Assembly: GCA_964019335.1 (NCBI GenBank)
Contig: OZ025657.1
Coordinates: forward strand, 248,001 to 312,000
Length of the DNA stretch: 64,000 bases
Reading direction: 5' to 3'
Origin: Diplonema japonicum
Lineage: Eukaryota; Protista; Euglenozoa: Diplonemea
Shown here: positions 45,657 to 55,146 of the stretch, in pieces
How the letters are laid out: every line of letters begins with the position of its first letter
Position numbering within the stretch: position 1 is the first letter of the stretch
Position numbers and translations under genes: made by a program
The notes under the pieces: model-generated
Database searches by the model: none
The model's input: only the letters and a program-made list of their open reading frames with translations
Told to the model about the DNA's origin: nothing

Positions 45657-45904
45657 TCAACTCGTATACAAAAACAATTCATGACCGCATCCAACAGCGA
45701 GGACGTCCTCCCGGGGGTGCGCAGCAAGATGCAGGGTCTTACTTTGGAAATCCATGTCCTTATTGTTTTTTTTTCCCCCCCTTTCTTTTTTTTTTCTTTC
45801 TTTTAAACACACCTCATAAGCTTGGGGTCGAACAGCGGCACCCCGACCTCCATGGTCGACAACTGGCCCCATGCTAGGAGCTTGCATGTTTGTTGTATAC
45901 AGCT

Positions 45905-45959
<55 letters not shown>

Positions 45960-47327
45960 ACACACCTTCGACGACCCGTCCTGACCGAACTGCACAAACT
46001 CCGACCTGTAGGACCCTGTATAAATGTCCTCGCCGCTGCCATTGGTGACAACCTCAAATCTATCAAAAACGTAGTCGTGCTCATACAGCTCCGTGAGCCT
46101 GGGCTGGATCCCATCATGAACAGGCAAGGTCCTTACTGGCGCGGCCTCCTTCCTCGCATCCCAGATATTCACATTCATGTAATCCCTCGCTATGATATAA
46201 GTCCCACATGGAGAGTACTTTACGTCAGATATGCCTGCCAGGATGGTGGAAAGGTACACGTTGGGTCCGGAGATGGGACGTGATGGAAGTGTCAGAGCAG
46301 GGCTTGTGCATGTTAGGTTTGTTCTGAGATCGTAAAGGGAAACAACGCCTTTTGAATTCGCGACGCAGAACTCCTGGGGTTGTATTGTGTGGTAAGCTGT
46401 TGCTGTGATTGTCTCGGACAACTCCTCCATCTGGTCCGGCCGTTGGTCCAAGACCCGAAGGCTTTTTTCATGGTGTCCAAGATGCCACAGCTGAACGGTC
46501 AGGTCATCGCTGGTTAGAAAGTTTTCCCTATTCGCCGAGCACGAGATGGAATTAACGTGGTACTCATGGTCGGCAGCAAAGACCTTCATTTCCTTGTGCC
46601 ATATTGTCGGGGAGCCACGTTGGATTCCCGGGAATTTCAATGAATTCCAGTCTTCTAATATTGCCGCCACAGGCTCGTATTCCTCAACAACAGCATGTGC
46701 CCTCTCCCAGATTTTCCACATTTTAATGGTTTTGTCGTTCGCCGTTAGGAAGAACAGGGAGCCGTTCCCGAGGTCGATGAACTTCAACACGTTCACCTTC
46801 GCCTCGATTTCCGTGGAGTTGAGCGTGTCAAGCTGGGGTTGGTACGCATCAACAACGTCGACTAGCGTGTAGCCCAAGGCAGAAGGAGAAGCGTCATGGT
46901 TAGGAGTGAGGGATGCAAGGCGTTTGTTTGACCTACAGAAGATGTAACACCTGCCTGCACGGTCCCCGTAGGCCATGTGATCGCCCGTTGAGTCGAATGC
47001 CACGCATGAGATGGAAGGTGGAAGCTCCTCTGACCCGGTGTCGTATTGCTCCTTCGTTGCTGCGTTTGTGATCATTTGTTGTATTTTGAGCTCCACATCC
47101 GTTCGAGACGAGCGCCGCAGGTTATCTCTCAACGCAGTGGGGTCTCTGTATCGGTTCGTTCCAACCGGTTTCGTCACCACCCCACCCACTGCCCCCGCTT
47201 CCCTGCTCTTCCCCACACTTTGCTGCGGATCGCTTGCCCCCCTCTGCCTCGGAGCCGGAGGCGACGTCGTCCTCCCCGTTGGGGTGTTTTTTTTCACAGG
47301 TTTGACGGCCTTTGGTTTCGCCGACAT
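45657..47327 (-). CDS. PPP2R2: Protein phosphatase 2A regulatory subunit B55 (PR55, WD40)
   Basis: GDRAGR, LNSTEIEAKVN, TANDKTIKMWK, HEYHVNSIS, SDDLTVQLW, ARDYM, LYEHDYVFDRF. In-frame introns 45903-45965 and 45759-45812; start MSAKPK at 47327. Confidence 0.92.
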
Positions 47328-47597
47328 TTTCTTTTTTTTCTTCTTCTTTCTGTTCTCTGCCCTCCCTTCCCCTCCTCCTTTTGTTTTATTTCTTTTTTTT
47401 CTCCTTTTAAAGAAAAAGCTACGAGAAGGGGGGGGGGGGGGGGGGAACAATGAGCCGAGCTAAGGCGGTTTCTATTTCTATCTGTATCACAGTGTCACGT
47501 TATGTTAAGAGAAATAAAAACATAAAAAAGAGAGACAGAAGTAAAAAATGGAATACAAGTATATGGGCGAACGATAAGAGTATAAGAGAGGGGGTCG

Positions 47598-50500
47598 CTA
47601 ATTGCTCGTCCCACTGCGCGTGGATGCCTGGCTGAGACGTTGCGTTGAGCGACGAGACAGTCTGTCGCTCATGCCGACGGCGCTGGTGCTGATGAGGGAC
47701 GAGGCTGCGAGCTCTTTGCCTGCTTCGAGCTGGTGGCGCTCGAGGTCATCTGCAAGGGGGTCGAGGAGGAGGTCTTGTCCACCGGGACAGTACTGTTGGC
47801 GCTCAGGGAGGATGTCGGGCATTTCAGTTGTGTTGTGAGTCTGACGGAGAGGACGCTCTGCACGCTCTTCCCACTTTTTCCACGAAAGGTGGTCCCACGC
47901 CCATTGACACATCAACACCCTATCATATGACAGAACAAGGTGCTCTAGCTCTATACGTACTGCATTGTACTCAGGAAGTTTGTCGACTTCGTGCTCTGTA
48001 AGGCACCGGTCCATTTCGCTCAGCGTCCATTCCACGGAATCATTCCAGTCGTATTCGTCCTCGTCCCAGTTTCCCCAGTTTGTAATCTCGGACCGCCCAT
48101 CGGTTCTGTCCTTCACATCCAGGGCCGCTGCGATGGAGAACACCTTCGCCAATGTCGTCCCATGGGCTTGTGTTGCTGACTTGTAAAAGATCAGATACTC
48201 CAAGTGGTCCTTCATCAAGGCGTAGTTCTTTACCTTCCCCTGCTCGTACAGCTTGTACGTCCTTAGAACCAATGACAGCTTGTCGCATGGTTCACATGGC
48301 AGTCTCAGACACGTGCGTTTCTCCTCCAATTCCGTCACGACCTTGATTTGATATCGGATGCGTTCCATCTGAGCTGCGTGCTCCATGCCCTTGCGGTCAA
48401 CTTCTCGTCCCGAGAACTTCCCTCCTCCGACATATGTTGAGCTGTTCATCGCGTCGAGTAGTGCGGTGAATTGTTGCTTCGTCCGTTGGCTGGCATAGTT
48501 CACAATGAGCGTCCTCACAGGCAGATCAAGAGAGTCATACATCTTGTGCCAGTAGTGCAACTGTACACCTGCATCCTCGACTGCTGGAAGGCCGCAGCAG
48601 GGATCTTCTCCTGGTTTCCACACTCCAAGGAGATGCAGGGATACTCCGTGGCACACATTCACCGGGGAGGAAGGACTCCTGTCCACAAGGATGAGCTTCC
48701 ACTTGTTTTCTTCCTTCGTTATGATCGCCGGTTCCGTCGTGTGGTCATAGAACGGTTGCCCGTCGCCGTGCACCGACGGCCGTCTTGTGTATGAACCATT
48801 TAGCTTAATAGCACCCCGCGCCAACCCGGACACGACGACCTCCTCGACAATAATGTCCTCCTTCCGTATGTACTGGGCACGTGTGTCGGGGTCCATAGAG
48901 GTTTCTTCGGAAGTTTGGGAGATTGAGTCTTCGTCTTCATTTAGAATATCCCCTCGTGCTTTGCGCAAGCACAGCTTGTGAAGGTACACCGATGCAAGAC
49001 AGTGAGGGGAAGATTCGGTGTCTAGTTGTACTGAACGCTTACGCTTCTTCATGGATAGCGGCGTGACGATACGTGAGTCCGCCACCACCCAACACGGGCC
49101 CTCAAGCCCAGAGATAGACTTACCACACCCAGCACACCTGAAGCAACAGCTATGGAACTTATAGTCCTTGTACGTCATTTTCGCAACATCATCGATGTCG
49201 TTCAGGATTGGAGACGGACGGGTGCACATGCTGTGCGCGCAGAAGCCCCTCTGGTACGGCTTGAATATAGCGAGCACTGGGTTGTACATCACGGAGTTCC
49301 GGAGGTACTCTAACGAGAGCCGCCACTTCCCTTGTTGCATTTTTTTCATTCGCTGGAACATCATATCCTTGTCGACGCCGCTGAAGCGCACGCTCTCACC
49401 CATGGACGCAGTGAGCACACCGATGATGCCGATGCCGCTGACCATCAGGAACACGGCGAGCACACGGGAAATGGGATTTGTGGGGACCATGTCGCCGTAC
49501 CCGATCGTGGTCACCGTCACGATGCAGAACCACAGCACGTTTTCGTACTTCCCAAAGACCTCTTGCTCTTCCTGCTCCACAAGCTTGATGATGATGCCAA
49601 GGGTCACAATAAGACCACAGATGAAAATCGCCTGCCAGACATTGTCGTAGCGCAAGATGAGCCCGAGCACGGCCTGCTGCTGCGTAACTCTGTGGTAGAG
49701 CCTGACAACACGGAACATCTAGGGAAAACATTCGAATGAAGAGGAAAAAAAGTAATACCTTTAAAATCCTCAAAACCCTAACTAGCCTCGCCACGACAAG
49801 GATGCTCAGGGCACCTGCGGTGGTCACTCCAGGGATGTCGGAAATCAAGGAAGGAAAGTCGTACCTGTTAATGACGTGATGGTCGGACGTGCAAGGAAAG
49901 CACACACCAGTTTTGAAAGCAATAGTCGCTGAAGTCTTTGTACTCGCCCTCATCACGGAAGATCCACCTGTACAATAGATCGACGAAGAAGACTGTAGAT
50001 GTGAAGAAATCAATCCATGCCATTGTGTTCTCGACACTGATGGATAGCCCGCCCTTTTCCCACATAGACGCTACCCACAGTCCCACCGACAACAGCGTTA
50101 GCAAAAACAAAAACGACTGCACTATCATCTCGCCCTGTTTTTTTTTTTTTTAATCTTCTTTTTAAATAAGTAAAAGGGGAACATACCCGCAATCCGCTGG
50201 CCCGTTGTATCTTATCGTCCAGCTCCGCCATGGCAGCGAAGAGTTCCTCTTCGCTGCAGTTTTCGCGTGTTGTTTCCCTCCATTGCCGATTGACCCATTC
50301 ATCGTAGTAAGACTGCGTGAGGTACGGTCAAAAGAAAAAAACCCCCAAATACCTTCTTTTCATGGTAGAGAGACTCTCTGTGTCGCTTTCGGTAGACGCC
50401 GACAAGGAGGCAAGAGATGATGAGGAAGAAGGAGAAAACACCCCAAGCGGCGTACAGGATGATCAAGTCGTTGACGCAGGAGCCGGGAGAGTAGCGCTGG

Positions 50501-51972
50501 TGGTTTGAACAAGATGCTCTGTCGGTGATGATGTCGCCTTCGTCGCCGATCCCGTCGTTGTCGCTGTCGTTTGTGAAGCGGTGCGACAGAGGGATGCCGT
50601 CGACAAGGTCCCACACACGGTCGTTGTCCTTGTCGAGGTCCATAAACCACAGCGAGACACGGCCGTCGTCAGGAATTAACCGTTTGTACATGACAACATC
50701 GTCCCTGGTCGCAATCTCCCCAACCTCGTCGAGAAGGGTCCCGTCGAATGTTTTACACGTCAGTATCTTCCTTCCCGAGCCTGTCTTTCCGTATATCTTG
50801 AAGGTCCAGTACTCGATCCCTTCGGAACCAATGTTCGCGACGACGCCGTCCTTCGTACCTTCGATCAACTTCACCGTTCTGGTCGTTCTCGACTCGGGGA
50901 TGACAAACACTTCTTCGTGGCACCCGAACACCGCCACTACGGCAAACCCACCAATGTCGTTGGAAACGGACAGGAAGAGCCACAACCCACCGCCCATCAC
51001 ACCACGGAGGAACCTGTACCCATCTAACTGCCACACAGACGGCGGTATGACGCATCGTTCGAGGCCTGGAAGAGTGAACGTGTAAACCACAGTACGGTCC
51101 GTTGAGCCGACGGTGGCAGGGAGCACATCCACAGTTTCATTAGACTGATACAGCATGAGGTCCGCAAAAGAGGGTGCCACAAGAACAGATGCCATGGCTT
51201 CAACGCCTTCGTTCCCGGTGGCGTTCCATAGCCTTCCAGCGTAGGCGGGGATTGATGAGTGGGCAAGGGGTTCGCTGTCGCCAGTGTCTAGGTAGTGAAT
51301 CAACACTTGAGACGTCTTGGTGTCCACATTCCACACTCCGTGGACCACCCACCACCCAACTACATATGCTTTCACAGCAAATGCGTTTGAAGGTGTATCT
51401 AGGCTGATCTTTGCCTTCCTCCAAATATCGAAAAGGTAGATCTCAGTGGTGTTGGATGCGTAGGGTGTTGTGAAAACAAGATATCTATCGTCGGCTTGAA
51501 GATCGGTAGGCTCTGTGATGCCCCGTAGGAAGACGAAGGTAGCCTCTTCCCAATTCGACTTGTAGAGTGACCACGGATCGAAGTTTGTGAACTTATACCA
51601 AGGTTCCCCTTGCGCTTTCGTGAGGTACCACCCGTTCTGAAACATGTCTGGAAAACCATCCAAAATCGTGACCCAAATATCACGGGAGCCCCCGTGTTCA
51701 AGCCCTAGCCAGACGGACCCGAACTCGGTGGCTACAAGGCTGCGGGGGCTGCTCATGAGCTCAACATTGTCATCTATATCACCTAGTACCCTACTCCAAT
51801 CCATCCCCGAAGCACCCTTTATCCTTACGTCCTGCAACTGGCTCACATCCACATTCAAGTATCCCCATGGCCGGTATGACAGTGAATTACATCGAAAATC
51901 CCATAAATGGGACGAAGTACTTTCGTCTGCTACCAGACCGTATGCCAACGCTGCCACAGCCACCGCATACAT
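47598..51972 (-). CDS. Voltage-gated K+ channel fused to a large N-terminal ectodomain (5 exons, ~1399 aa)
   Basis: Introns 50313-50352, 50135-50186, 49865-49907 and 49719-49758 join four ORFs in frame. S4 ARLVRVLRILKMFRVVR; pore WFCIVTVTTIGYGDMVP; LIM-like CxxxxC..H..CFRCAGC downstream. Confidence 0.8.
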
Positions 51973-52275: not shown

Positions 52276-55146
52276 CTACGGGTCCAATTGCTGAAGGCGG
52301 CATCTTAACAACTCTTGACGCATTCGCACCTGTTTTATACTCTTTTCTCTCCCCCCATTTTTTCTTTTCCAACACACCTCTTTCCTTGCTCTTTTTACAT
52401 CCTTGAGCCTTCTCATGTGGAACTGAATGAAGGCAGCTGCCTCATCGCGCTCAGTGTCCATGACGATGGCACGGTGCCGCAGCATCTTAACAGTTTCCCT
52501 TGCGGCCTTAAGCCTCCATGCCCGTTGTATAGTGCAGGCTTTCTCATAAATGTCGAGCTCAGCGAGATTCAAGAGGATTCCTAAAGCAGGAAGCTCTGCA
52601 GCAGGTGTCTCCCCAAGAATATCCACCAAGTTAGGCCTTAGGTCTATCCGAGGAGATACAACTAAGGGGGATGTCAAGTCTGGGTATTCGATCGTCGGAG
52701 CAGGGGCTAAGACAGAAGATTCCGGAAGCATATCTGTGACGGCAAGCATTCCCTCCAACCAGCTCTCGTTGCACAACGAGCCGCACACGTGTTGCAGGGC
52801 AGTGAGGGAACCCTTCTCTCGTAACACCCCATCTTGCACTTCTCTCGATTCACGGTGATTTTCAGCACCTGAAAACTGCTCCTCGGAGACAGGGACAGAG
52901 GTAAGGACACATTTTGCTTCGCACTTGGTGCCCACTCCGTTCACGTTATCGCTGCCGTCGGACCTGGGAGCGCAGTTAGGGTTTTGGCTGAGTATATCCA
53001 ACATGCTTGCCAGCCACGGCGTCTCTTCACCGCCCAACTCTTGCACTGCGGACAGTGTAGGGAAGCCTTCCGTCGCAGTGGTCGACGACAGGCCACGGGG
53101 AACGACAGTCACAGGGGGCTGGACATCTTGCGCAAGACCTACTTCGATGATGCCTGTCACCCATAGCATCTCGCCGTCACAGTTCAGGTGTGTCAGCGCG
53201 GGGAAAGGTTCTGTCTCAACTTCAAGTTCTGTGTCCTGCCTGGACGGCAACCCTTCGTCAAGTAAGTCAAGCACGCCACTAAGCCATGCCAAGTCGCCAA
53301 TAGCATTAACGAATTTCAAGGCGGGACACAACTCAGTGCTGGGTAGCGGTGTCATGTATGCCACATCATTCAACCACATAGTCTCGTCGTTCCCGACGAA
53401 GGCCAGCGCAGGGTGGGGAGGCTGTTCCCCGTCACTCACGATGAGTGATTCACGAGGGCTTTGCTCTGGAGACACAGAAGCAACCTCTGGGGTTGCGAGA
53501 ACGGGGGGTGCAACGGGGCTTGGGATGACGGGGCGCTTCTCGGGTTTTTGCAGTTTCTGTTCTTCTTCTTCGACCTGCTGCTTCAGGAACTGGATGTAAG
53601 ATCTTATGTTACTGGACTCGAGGTTCTCCCATTCCTCGCCTGGGTCATACGGGTTGTTGATGATCTTCACACCTTCCTCGTCTAGCTGGGTCAGTGCGTC
53701 TGTTTCGAGGAGGCTGATCTCCACAGGAGGGGTGGCTGCCTTCGTAGGGGGCGATGCGGGTCGTATGATGCACCTGAAGTGCGACTTCCCTAAGACAAGC
53801 CTGTCCCCGACCTCGATGCGCTCCGCCCCCATGTCGATACGGAGGCCGTTCTTGCGGATCTGTGCTGTTTTCATAGCGGCCGCGACCCATATTGCCCCTG
53901 CTGCATCGACAGCCAGAAGGCAGTGAACGGGTTTCAAGTCCTTCATACCCTCCCATAGGCCGTGGTCTGTGCTGTTCCCATTGTACGCGTGCATCATCTG
54001 AGCTGACCCGATGGTGGAAACCCCGAGTCGCAGCTCAAACGCTTGGTACAAGTCACGTGTGTTGACCAGTTTCGCCACTATCTCCCCCGGCCGGACCTTT
54101 CCGTCCGCACAAAAGTCTAACTCCGCAAACGGTGTGTGTCGTTTAGGCTTCTTGACCTTCTCCTTCTCCTTCGGCTTCGTTTGGTGCTTCGTCTCGGGCC
54201 CCCCGTGCAAGTCGGGGAGCTTAGGAAGGTGTTCCTTTCGGCTGAAGCTGCTGCGGCGTCCCGCACCCATAGTTTTGGACATGCCTTCCTGTGAGTCGGG
54301 GGGCTTGGGGCGGAGTGTAGGCGGGAAGGTTCCTATGGGGTCGAAAGTATCGGCTTCATAGGACTTGGGCCTGGGGAGGATACCTCGGTGATAGAACGCA
54401 GGTTCTTCATTATGCGTCGAGGGGGGCATAGGGCAGGCCATGTCGTTGTAGGCCATGGTGGAACGCACCTTCTTTGCGATGTCAGAGTCGTCACCCACCT
54501 CAGAGGCGTAGAGCAGGGCTTTTTGAAGGTTCCGGGCTGCTTCACAACGCCGTTCAGGGATGACAGAGCCGCTTTGCGCGAGGGACAGGATGTGGCACGC
54601 ACAGGCGAGGACGTTCAGATCTTTTTGAGAAATGCTGCCAGCGGTTCGTTGTCCTTGAAGCGCGGTGACTGCGTGCTGTGCACTCGAAATGGCGGAGTCG
54701 TACCTACCCATGTCAAGAAGAAGAAGTGCTAGGCTTACATTGGTGGCAGGTCGTGGCTCACCCTCAAGCATGGCCGCTTCTAAGAGGAACATCACCGCAT
54801 CGTCATCGCAGTCGTTAATCTTGGCGAGATAGGCTAGGTTGCTGTAAACCGCTGCACGGTGTTCTTCTCGTTCCTTGTCCTTGCCGTAGAAGTACCCTTC
54901 TTCTTCTCTTGTTATGAACTCGGCTTCGTTTAGCATTCTTCCTGCTAGGTCGGTGTCGGTCTTTTCTTCTAGTAGTTTACCAGCTACGGTGTTGAGTTCT
55001 CTTACATAGTCTTCGGCTGCTGTAGATAAGAAGGTAGTTGTTCCACCATCCTTTCTTGCAAGCAACACCGCTTTCAACTCTTTAACCCGATCAAACTCAG
55101 ATGTTAAACTGTTAGTTCCGGACACGTGCTGTGTCCCATGTTCCAT
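52276..55146 (-). CDS. TPR-like and IQ-motif protein with internal PAL...WL repeats
   Basis: N-terminal TPR-like helices (AVYSNLAYLA, ATNVSLALLLLDMGRYDSA); IQ motifs ACTIQRAWR and AAAFIQFHMR. In-frame 48-nt intron at 52330-52377. Confidence 0.75.
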   Translation of the reverse strand: MEHGTQHVSGTNSLTSEFDRVKELKAVLLARKDGGTTTFLSTAAEDYVRELNTVAGKLLEEKTDTDLAGRMLNEAEFITREEEGYFYGKDKEREEHRAAVYSNLAYLAKINDCDDDAVMFLLEAAMLEGEPRPATNVSLALLLLDMGRYDSAISSAQHAVTALQGQRTAGSISQKDLNVLACACHILSLAQSGSVIPERRCEAARNLQKALLYASEVGDDSDIAKKVRSTMAYNDMACPMPPSTHNEEPAFYHRGILPRPKSYEADTFDPIGTFPPTLRPKPPDSQEGMSKTMGAGRRSSFSRKEHLPKLPDLHGGPETKHQTKPKEKEKVKKPKRHTPFAELDFCADGKVRPGEIVAKLVNTRDLYQAFELRLGVSTIGSAQMMHAYNGNSTDHGLWEGMKDLKPVHCLLAVDAAGAIWVAAAMKTAQIRKNGLRIDMGAERIEVGDRLVLGKSHFRCIIRPASPPTKAATPPVEISLLETDALTQLDEEGVKIINNPYDPGEEWENLESSNIRSYIQFLKQQVEEEEQKLQKPEKRPVIPSPVAPPVLATPEVASVSPEQSPRESLIVSDGEQPPHPALAFVGNDETMWLNDVAYMTPLPSTELCPALKFVNAIGDLAWLSGVLDLLDEGLPSRQDTELEVETEPFPALTHLNCDGEMLWVTGIIEVGLAQDVQPPVTVVPRGLSSTTATEGFPTLSAVQELGGEETPWLASMLDILSQNPNCAPRSDGSDNVNGVGTKCEAKCVLTSVPVSEEQFSGAENHRESREVQDGVLREKGSLTALQHVCGSLCNESWLEGMLAVTDMLPESSVLAPAPTIEYPDLTSPLVVSPRIDLRPNLVDILGETPAAELPALGILLNLAELDIYEKACTIQRAWRLKAARETVKMLRHRAIVMDTERDEAAAFIQFHMRRLKDVKRARKEVCWKRKNGGREKSIKQVRMRQELLRCRLQQLDP

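Follow-up and report, generated by a model that had tools for sequence, protein, structure and literature searches.

A gene of the marine diplonemid Diplonema japonicum encodes a large ectodomain with a predicted propeller fold and the core of a voltage-gated K+ (Kv) channel in one polypeptide. It occupies positions 51972–47598 on the minus strand of the window—the 64,000-nucleotide stretch 248001–312000 of contig OZ025657.1 (contig 10 of the assembly), to which all coordinates below refer—and consists of five exons specifying a 1399-residue membrane protein that belongs to a conserved protist family with a common order of parts. From its N-terminus, the protein comprises a probable signal peptide, a predicted β-propeller, two Asp-rich motifs resembling thrombospondin type 3 (TSP3) repeats, a Cys pair, an extra transmembrane (TM) helix (TM0), helices S1–S6 with a K+ selectivity filter, and a long cytosolic tail. 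That ectodomain and channel form a single gene, as had been claimed in a first-pass annotation of the window, is borne out by spliced contigs, by an intron-free paralogue matched by transcripts, by collinear orthologues, and by the conservation of the same layout in distant protists. We consider it likely that the product is a Kv-type channel with seven TM helices and an outward-facing N-terminus, in which the propeller module acts as an auxiliary subunit fused in cis. Voltage-gated K+ channels are six-TM proteins with cytosolic N-termini, and to our knowledge large ectodomains reach them only via separate auxiliary subunits such as DPP6 and LRRC26 or, in the case of a related Ca2+ channel, the CatSper canopy.

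Gene structure and splicing

By direct reading of the sequence, the five exons are joined by four GT-AG introns of 40, 52, 43, and 40 nt into a single frame of 1399 codons; frame arithmetic on the minus strand agrees with this product length, which the first-pass annotation had put forward. Exon 1 (51972–50353, 540 codons) encodes the ectodomain and TM0 and is linked to the channel exons by intron 1 (50352–50313, 40 nt, AAG/GTATTT...GCAG/TCT). Exon 2 (50312–50187, 42 codons) specifies the cytosolic TM0–S1 linker and is followed by intron 2 (50186–50135, 52 nt), the 3′ part of which is A-rich. S1, S2 (FFVDLLYRW), and the start of S3 reside on exon 3 (50134–49908). Intron 3 (49907–49865, 43 nt) interrupts a Trp codon, and exon 4 (49864–49759) contributes S3 (YDFPSLISDIPG) and the first half of S4 (ARLVRVLRILK). 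After intron 4 (49758–49719, 40 nt), exon 5 (49718–47598, 706 codons plus stop) supplies the second half of S4 (MFRVVRLYHR), S5, the pore helix, the filter, S6, and a cytosolic tail of ~590 amino acids (aa). Published D. japonicum introns (PMC12621601) are GT-AG in 98% of cases, and their median length is 41 nt; the 5′ site reads G/GTATG, and the 3′ tract is A-rich. All four introns of the channel gene agree with this type in size and 5′ splice sites. They are packed within ~640 nt around S1–S4.

Transcript-type evidence comes from X1 and X2, runs guessed to be RNA that stem from close relatives ~98% identical to the window and cover the gene in fragmentary contigs. One X1 contig, with 115 nt on its shorter side, connects 50312 directly with 50353 and omits precisely those 40 nucleotides (50313–50352) that had been proposed as the GT-AG intron joining the two open reading frames (ORFs). 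A second X1 contig omits 49865–49907, i.e., intron 3 (joint 49862→49906, with the cut shifted by +2). At intron 2, record 13 of X2 contains 7 letters where the genome has 59, which corresponds to the removal of the 52-nt intron. Of the three further micro-introns proposed earlier, introns 2 and 3 are hence seen in spliced contigs; intron 4 is accepted on a gap-free orthologue alignment over the junction (residues 752/753) and on the unbroken periodicity of S4. One X2 contig stops matching at 49736 inside intron 4 and continues with unrelated letters; in the relative, intron 4 may be unspliced here or may have diverged. Should X1 and X2 be DNA, the relatives would possess the gene without these introns, and the reading frame is continuous in both cases. 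The relatives' contigs also bear on the frame itself: in exons 1, 2, 3, and 5, they differ from the genome at 38 sites, of which 28 are synonymous and 29 are third codon positions in the proposed frame (in exon 2, two synonymous third-position differences), indicating purifying selection on exactly this frame.

Paralogue, orthologues, and the spread of the fusion

The genome contains one paralogue, located on contig 13 (L011 4059–7259, minus strand). It is a single ORF of 1066 codons without intron in which signal peptide, ectodomain, Asp motifs, Cys pair, TM0, S1–S6, and a TTVGYGD filter succeed one another and which extends beyond S6. EukProt contains transcript ORFs from D. japonicum with 100% identity to this ORF, which matches the transcript-derived proteins P0001 and P0004. 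Since the paralogue is intron-free from the signal peptide to past S6, whereas the window gene has four introns, the two copies differ by intron gain or loss. A candidate splice joint 49448→50621 in X4 was rejected, as it represents a cross-match of a contig from this paralogue at the conserved GYGD and DLDKDND stretches.

In the orthologue P0010 from Paradiplonema papillatum (1486 aa), all five exons are collinear with the window gene, and the numbering is contiguous at each junction (599/600, 641/642, 716–718, and 752/753). Identity amounts to 33% in the ectodomain and to 58–80% in the channel: 76% for exon 2 (residues 603–640), 65% for exon 3 (642–716), 80% for exon 4 (718–752), and 58% for exon 5 (753–1467). 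In a search of 1.84 billion representative proteins with an ectodomain profile (A1), matches to the full-length ectodomain were obtained, and every complete protein among them carries Ion_trans and Ion_trans_2 domains downstream. A further, more distant set matches by HMMER only in the Asp-motif/TM0 region; six of its seven members scanned with Pfam have channel domains, the exception being P0122. Alignment of the close and the distant group by hhalign extends over 1045 columns, starting at an N-terminal SH..C motif, covering the propeller, and ending past the pore. Used alone as a homologue query, exon 1 gave no match within the length range of 297–945 aa. The possibility that the two halves are always separate genes in orthologues, which the first-pass annotation had named as the finding that would speak against a fusion, is thus contradicted by each complete homologue, all of which have both halves in one protein.

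Family members come from Diplonemidae, from Hemistasiidae (Namystynia, Artemidia), and from early-branching kinetoplastids (Papus, Apiculatamorpha). The fusion for which a search of other euglenozoans had been proposed is therefore found in diplonemids and early-branching kinetoplastids alike. Further sources are Cyanophora paradoxa, a pedinophyte green alga, and metagenome contigs. In the C. paradoxa protein (P0101, 1955 aa), which may be a merged gene model, the Asp-motif/TM0/channel part is preceded by an N-terminal Peptidase_M13 fragment.

A different reading of the locus would split it into two genes, a type-I propeller protein (ORF 50299–51972) and a six-TM channel, expressed as separate mRNAs through trans-splicing and polyadenylation and adjoining in frame by coincidence. 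Euglenozoan genes are transcribed polycistronically and receive a spliced leader (SL) at AG sites. Without splicing of intron 1, moreover, ORF 50299–51972 stops 17 codons past exon 1, and the spliced contigs were not obtained from the sequenced strain. However, a contig joins 50312 to 50353 exactly, and its cis-spliced structure contradicts two separate mRNAs, although SL addition is unreadable from contigs. The paralogue encodes both halves in one intron-free ORF matched by transcript, and orthologues and distant homologues are all fused. Finally, a channel starting at exon 2 would have neither a start-codon context nor an N-terminus like that of any homologue. In view of the junction-spanning contig, the intron-free paralogue, and the fused homologues, the two-gene reading is hardly credible and was rejected in favor of a single gene. 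Retention of intron 1 (50299–50352) would yield a 557-aa type-I membrane protein consisting of propeller and TM0 without the channel, which could be an alternative product.

N-terminus and ectodomain

All features of the protein are encoded on the minus strand; the exons were analysed one by one, with the intron-free paralogue and database orthologues representing the full-length protein. The probable signal peptide (51928–51972) comprises the start codon and a short hydrophobic N-terminus (MYAVAVAALAYGLVA) and lies just before a conserved SH..RC motif in alignments A1 and A2; the paralogue and the orthologues have clearer hydrophobic N-termini at the equivalent place. It is followed by the ectodomain (50599–51900, residues ~25–458), which is predicted to fold into a 7-bladed β-propeller. 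The AlphaFold2 (AF2) model is all-beta, with 29 strands between residues 49 and 445, a predicted local distance difference test score (pLDDT) of 75, and a predicted template modelling score (pTM) of 0.77. In VIA-align comparisons, 270–320 residues were aligned with many unrelated 7-bladed propellers at Z 16.5–19.4, a flat list from which no single family stands out, and Foldseek matches comprise S9-peptidase, sortilin, and WD40 propellers. Fold prediction and Foldseek comparison, the checks suggested for the ectodomain at the outset, have thus returned a 7-bladed propeller model with propeller matches, and the fold agrees with the earlier description of this region as propeller-like (Z 19 against 7-bladed propellers). 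A per-exon Pfam scan gave no match for the ectodomain or the TM0–S1 linker, and the ESM Atlas offered weak leads only (0.80), to archaeal WD40/PD40 and TSP_3 proteins. Of four N-x-S/T sequons in the ectodomain, three lie in the propeller and the fourth in the Asp-rich region, and residues Cys28 and Cys406 are invariant in the family alignment; sequons and invariant cysteines are consistent with an oxidising environment outside the cytosol.

The best conserved part of the ectodomain consists of two Asp-rich TSP3-like motifs (DLDKDNDRVWDLVD ... NDSDNDGIGDEGD; 50533–50640). The conserved stretch DLDKDNDxxxDxxDxxP...DxDNDGxxDxxD displays TSP3 spacing, with N450, D451, D455, D458, P461, D469, D471, N472, and D473 being invariant, and the motifs are also invariant in the distant group. 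Positions 464–500 of profile A1 match multi-repeat TSP_3 proteins, and the family profile matches TSP_3-rich proteins at 1e-21 to 1e-37. The earlier assignment of Ca-binding TSP3-like repeats holds insofar as the motif occurs twice and is invariant; Pfam gives no significant TSP_3 score for the window itself. Between these motifs and the membrane lies a juxtamembrane pair of cysteines, C488 and C499 (50476–50511), which occupy near-invariant columns in A2.

TM0, channel core, and cytosolic tail

TM0 (LIILYAAWGVFSFFLIISCLLVGVY, followed by the basic stretch RKRHRESLYHEKK; 50392–50466, residues 503–527) has a hydropathy of 2.33 in a 19-residue window and coincides with a helix predicted by AF2 at residues 502–539. 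Seven Lys/Arg residues follow the helix and one precedes it, which predicts a cytosolic location for its C-terminal end and consequently the normal Kv orientation for S1–S6. Across the exon 4/5 junction, S4 (ARLVRVLRILK/MFRVVRLYHR) presents R, R, R, K, R, R at each third position, followed by H and R. S2 (FFVDLLYRW) and S3 (NWYDFP) contain candidates for the charge-transfer Phe and the acidic counter-charges of the sensor, namely the S2 Phe/Asp and the S3 Asp. The K+ selectivity filter TTIGYGD (49491–49511) was read directly, and in A4 its residues G73, Y74, G75, and D76 do not vary; in place of PVP, the S6 hinge reads GIGIIG. Signal peptide, Cys pair, extra TM helix, S1–S6, six S4 charges, TTIGYGD, and long tail, all listed in the first-pass annotation, were accordingly all found in the sequence.

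In Pfam scans, exon 5 matches Ion_trans_2 (PF07885) at 1.2e-15 (57.5 bits; cutoff, 22.5). Ion_trans (PF00520) reaches 4.3e-5 on exon 5 alone (23.3 bits; cutoff, 25), the voltage-sensor domain (VSD) being split over exons, whereas the homologue P0100 matches it at 1.5e-15 over profile positions 3–231 of 241. The VSD of the paralogue alone gives E 0.04 against NaChBac/Nav chimeras. The AF2 pore model of exon 5 has a pLDDT of ~90 and aligns at Z 12–13 with the pores of SK4, Kv4.2, and KvLm; this fold search covered the pore only, AF2 being confident just for the pore and a helical domain at exon 5 residues 477–610. No T1/BTB (PF02214), RCK, or cyclic-nucleotide domain was found in the Pfam scan of the exons or among the precomputed domains of family members.

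For most of the cytosolic tail, the AF2 pLDDT is <50. A LIM-like half zinc finger (C-x4-C ... H-x2-C-x2-C-x2-C; 49104–49241) remains below threshold. A LIM domain (PF00412) consists of two zinc modules, C-x2-C-x16-23-H-x2-C-x2-C-x2-C-x16-21-C-x2-C/H/D; the match here scores 20.8 bits (cutoff, 22.9), covers profile positions 13–37 of 58 (25 residues), and is missing the second module. The motif is kept only in the orthologue P0010, is absent from the paralogues, and has an AF2 pLDDT of <50. What stands of the LIM-like Zn finger proposed earlier is therefore a half-motif, below the Pfam threshold and with its second half missing. The helical C-terminal domain (47889–48290, exon 5 residues ~477–610) is modeled with a pLDDT of 86–93 and aligns in all family members, the distant ones included; it has no Pfam or ESM Atlas match, and the Atlas returned nothing for the tail.

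Comparison with known channels and auxiliary subunits

The architecture shares features with several known systems. With KvAP, KCNQ, Kv2, and Kv4, the Diplonema channel has in common an S1–S4 sensor with Arg/Lys at each third position, a T-x-G-Y-G-D filter, and the Ion_trans/Ion_trans_2 domains. Across VSD and pore, the channel region of the paralogue matches the sequences of KvAP, KCNQ, and Kv4 in the PDB at ~1e-11 (KvAP, E 6e-12). In contrast to six-TM Kv channels, the Diplonema protein features neither T1 nor the S6 PVP, and its N-terminus is predicted to be extracellular. It is not close to any animal Kv subfamily, the best E values outside the family being 1e-10 to 1e-12. Family members carry automatic names in databases that are silent on ectodomain and TM0: P0010 is listed by NCBI as ‘putative potassium channel protein 2’, and P0225 (KAJ9451282.1, P. 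papillatum), which belongs to the clade of the contig-13 paralogue, as ‘Potassium voltage-gated channel protein Shal’. The latter name misleads, given the absence of a T1/BTB domain; animal Kv2/Kv4 matches in the same search do carry PF02214, whereas the family members do not.

BK (Slo1) likewise has seven TM helices, the extra helix before S1 placing the N-terminus outside (PMC4193333). However, the BK N-terminus is short as compared with the ~500-residue folded propeller predicted for the Diplonema channel, the tail of the latter has no RCK/BK_channel_a match, and the sequence likeness is confined to the general K-channel level. The CatSper canopy subunits (CATSPER beta/gamma/delta/epsilon) each bear a propeller-containing ectodomain on a single TM helix that contacts S2 of the paired pore subunit, and four of them form a canopy above the channel (PMC12851028). 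They differ in being separate polypeptides of a Ca2+ channel with additional Ig-like and stem domains, while the Diplonema module is part of the K+ channel polypeptide itself and has TSP3-like motifs as its stem; the likeness is taken here as an analogy. DPP6/DPP10, which form complexes with Kv4, and LRRC26 are also single-pass proteins with a large ectodomain and a TM helix on the voltage sensor. The DPP6 helix contacts S1/S2 and that of LRRC26 the VSD of Slo1, both helices shift gating, and DPP6 modulates gating even without its ectodomain (PMC10950684). S9-family propellers, from the clan including DPP-IV-type enzymes, are among the top fold matches of the Diplonema ectodomain, which is generic for 7-bladed propellers. 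DPP6 differs in its opposite, type II orientation and added hydrolase-like domain, LRRC26 in having a leucine-rich repeat ectodomain instead of a propeller, and both in being separate subunits. Finally, the Asp motifs share the DxDxDGxxDxxD spacing of TSP_3 repeats, but there are only two of them and the repeat cysteines are not in register.

Proposed mechanism and alternatives

On these grounds, the following arrangement can be proposed. First, the signal peptide would take the N-terminus across the membrane, and the 7-bladed propeller would come to lie outside the cell or in a lumen, tethered to TM0 by the two Ca2+-binding-type DxDxDxD motifs and the putative disulfide pair. The basic flank of TM0 is expected to stay in the cytosol, with S1–S6 in standard Kv orientation, and the voltage sensor appears complete as judged from its six S4 charges, S2 Phe/Asp, and S3 Asp. 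Given such a sensor and the canonical K+ filter, four subunits should form a voltage-dependent, K+-selective pore. By analogy, TM0 may pack on the voltage sensor in the manner of BK S0, DPP6, LRRC26, and the CatSper canopy subunits, and four propellers might crown the channel. The cis auxiliary module could then govern channel assembly, placement at the surface, and voltage dependence, and it might bind a partner outside the cell. Since the Asp motifs are probably always Ca2+-loaded in sea water, a structural role as a Ca2+-stiffened stalk is suggested for them.

Several points weigh against this proposal. The RNA nature of X1 and X2 is a guess, both originate from relatives instead of the sequenced strain, and none of their contigs over the gene is spliced at intron 4. 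The window's own protein was not found in either large protein collection, nor in the D. japonicum transcriptome set, from which it follows that expression may be low. The signal peptide of the window gene is short and devoid of a basic n-region, and Pfam TSP_3 (PF02412) scores 8.7 bits on the window itself (E 1.8; cutoff, 25), which is not significant. The dispensability of the DPP6 ectodomain for gating implies that an ectodomain need not influence gating at all. Membrane location, ion selectivity, voltage dependence, packing of TM0 on the VSD, and Ca2+ binding are predictions from sequence or analogy.

A more far-reaching possibility, in line with the coupling to a ligand, adhesion, or Ca2+ sensor considered in the first-pass annotation, is that of a receptor-channel. 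Here, the propeller/TSP3-like module would respond to an external ligand, to contact with a surface or prey, or to altered external Ca2+ and act on the voltage sensor via TM0, directly opening the channel or shifting its gating. The Asp motifs beside TM0 are the best conserved ectodomain part in both the close and the distant group, and the propeller has been kept across very large evolutionary distances. Another member comes from the glaucophyte Cyanophora, a freshwater organism that experiences varying external Ca2+. Furthermore, the ectodomains of CatSper modulate channel activity (PMC12851028). On the other hand, no ligand-binding family signature was found in the ectodomain, the fold matches are generic (flat Z 16.5–19.4), and Ca2+ sites of this type would be saturated in sea water. 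We regard a receptor-channel with direct gating by ligand, contact, or Ca2+ as rather unlikely. It is likewise doubtful that the propeller/Ca2+-motif module constitutes a true extracellular sensor retuning the voltage sensor via TM0, which would make the protein a one-polypeptide receptor–Kv hybrid, the first-recognised member of its family, with no described counterpart.

The fused protein might also reside in an internal membrane (lysosome/digestive vacuole, contractile vacuole, flagellar pocket, or endoplasmic reticulum), with the propeller in the lumen and the channel serving organellar K+ flux. Topology as read from the sequence cannot separate the cell surface from a lumen, and the long conserved cytosolic tail could hold sorting signals. 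In a paper on P. papillatum subcellular proteomics (main text and four supplementary files), the terms ‘potassium channel’, ‘voltage-gated’, and ‘Shal’ did not occur; this silence means that a surface location is not demonstrated either and is counted in favor of an internal one. However, a full six-charge sensor is more typical of plasma-membrane channels, and the known modules combining an ectodomain and a single TM helix with a channel (CatSper, DPP6, LRRC26) act at the cell surface. An internal location therefore seems improbable as compared with the cis-fused auxiliary module of a Kv-type channel proposed above.

Novelty and implications

Literature searches returned no description of a Kv-type channel with a folded extracellular N-terminal domain, and surveys of eukaryotic Kv diversity gave no match to the terms searched (e.g., Euglenozoa, Diplonema, Discoba, extracellular domain). 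The earlier statement that the architecture is undescribed is accordingly upheld for the searchable literature but has to be qualified for databases, since NCBI and EukProt already contain orthologue models with generic or misleading names. The present analysis corrects these names, ‘Shal’ being unsuitable, and defines an ectodomain without Pfam match. With such a module fused in cis, the family, which spans diplonemids, early kinetoplastids, a glaucophyte, and a green alga, would amount to a natural experiment on the communication of an external domain and an additional helix with a voltage sensor. It also represents a concrete candidate for how abundant marine heterotrophs might link surface cues to membrane potential.

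Neighboring genes

Rfam and tRNA scans of the window found nothing. The three ORFs examined (45657–47450, the channel gene, and 52276–55146) are all located on the minus strand. ORF 52276–55146, directly upstream of the channel gene, has 956 codons and no Pfam match; the spacer of ~300 nt between it and the channel ATG contains a long C run and several A-runs. The other neighbor, 45657–47450, is a WD40-repeat gene (Pfam WD40, 1.2e-9) whose ORF reads through long A-runs as poly-Lys; these A-runs are probably poly(A) micro-introns.

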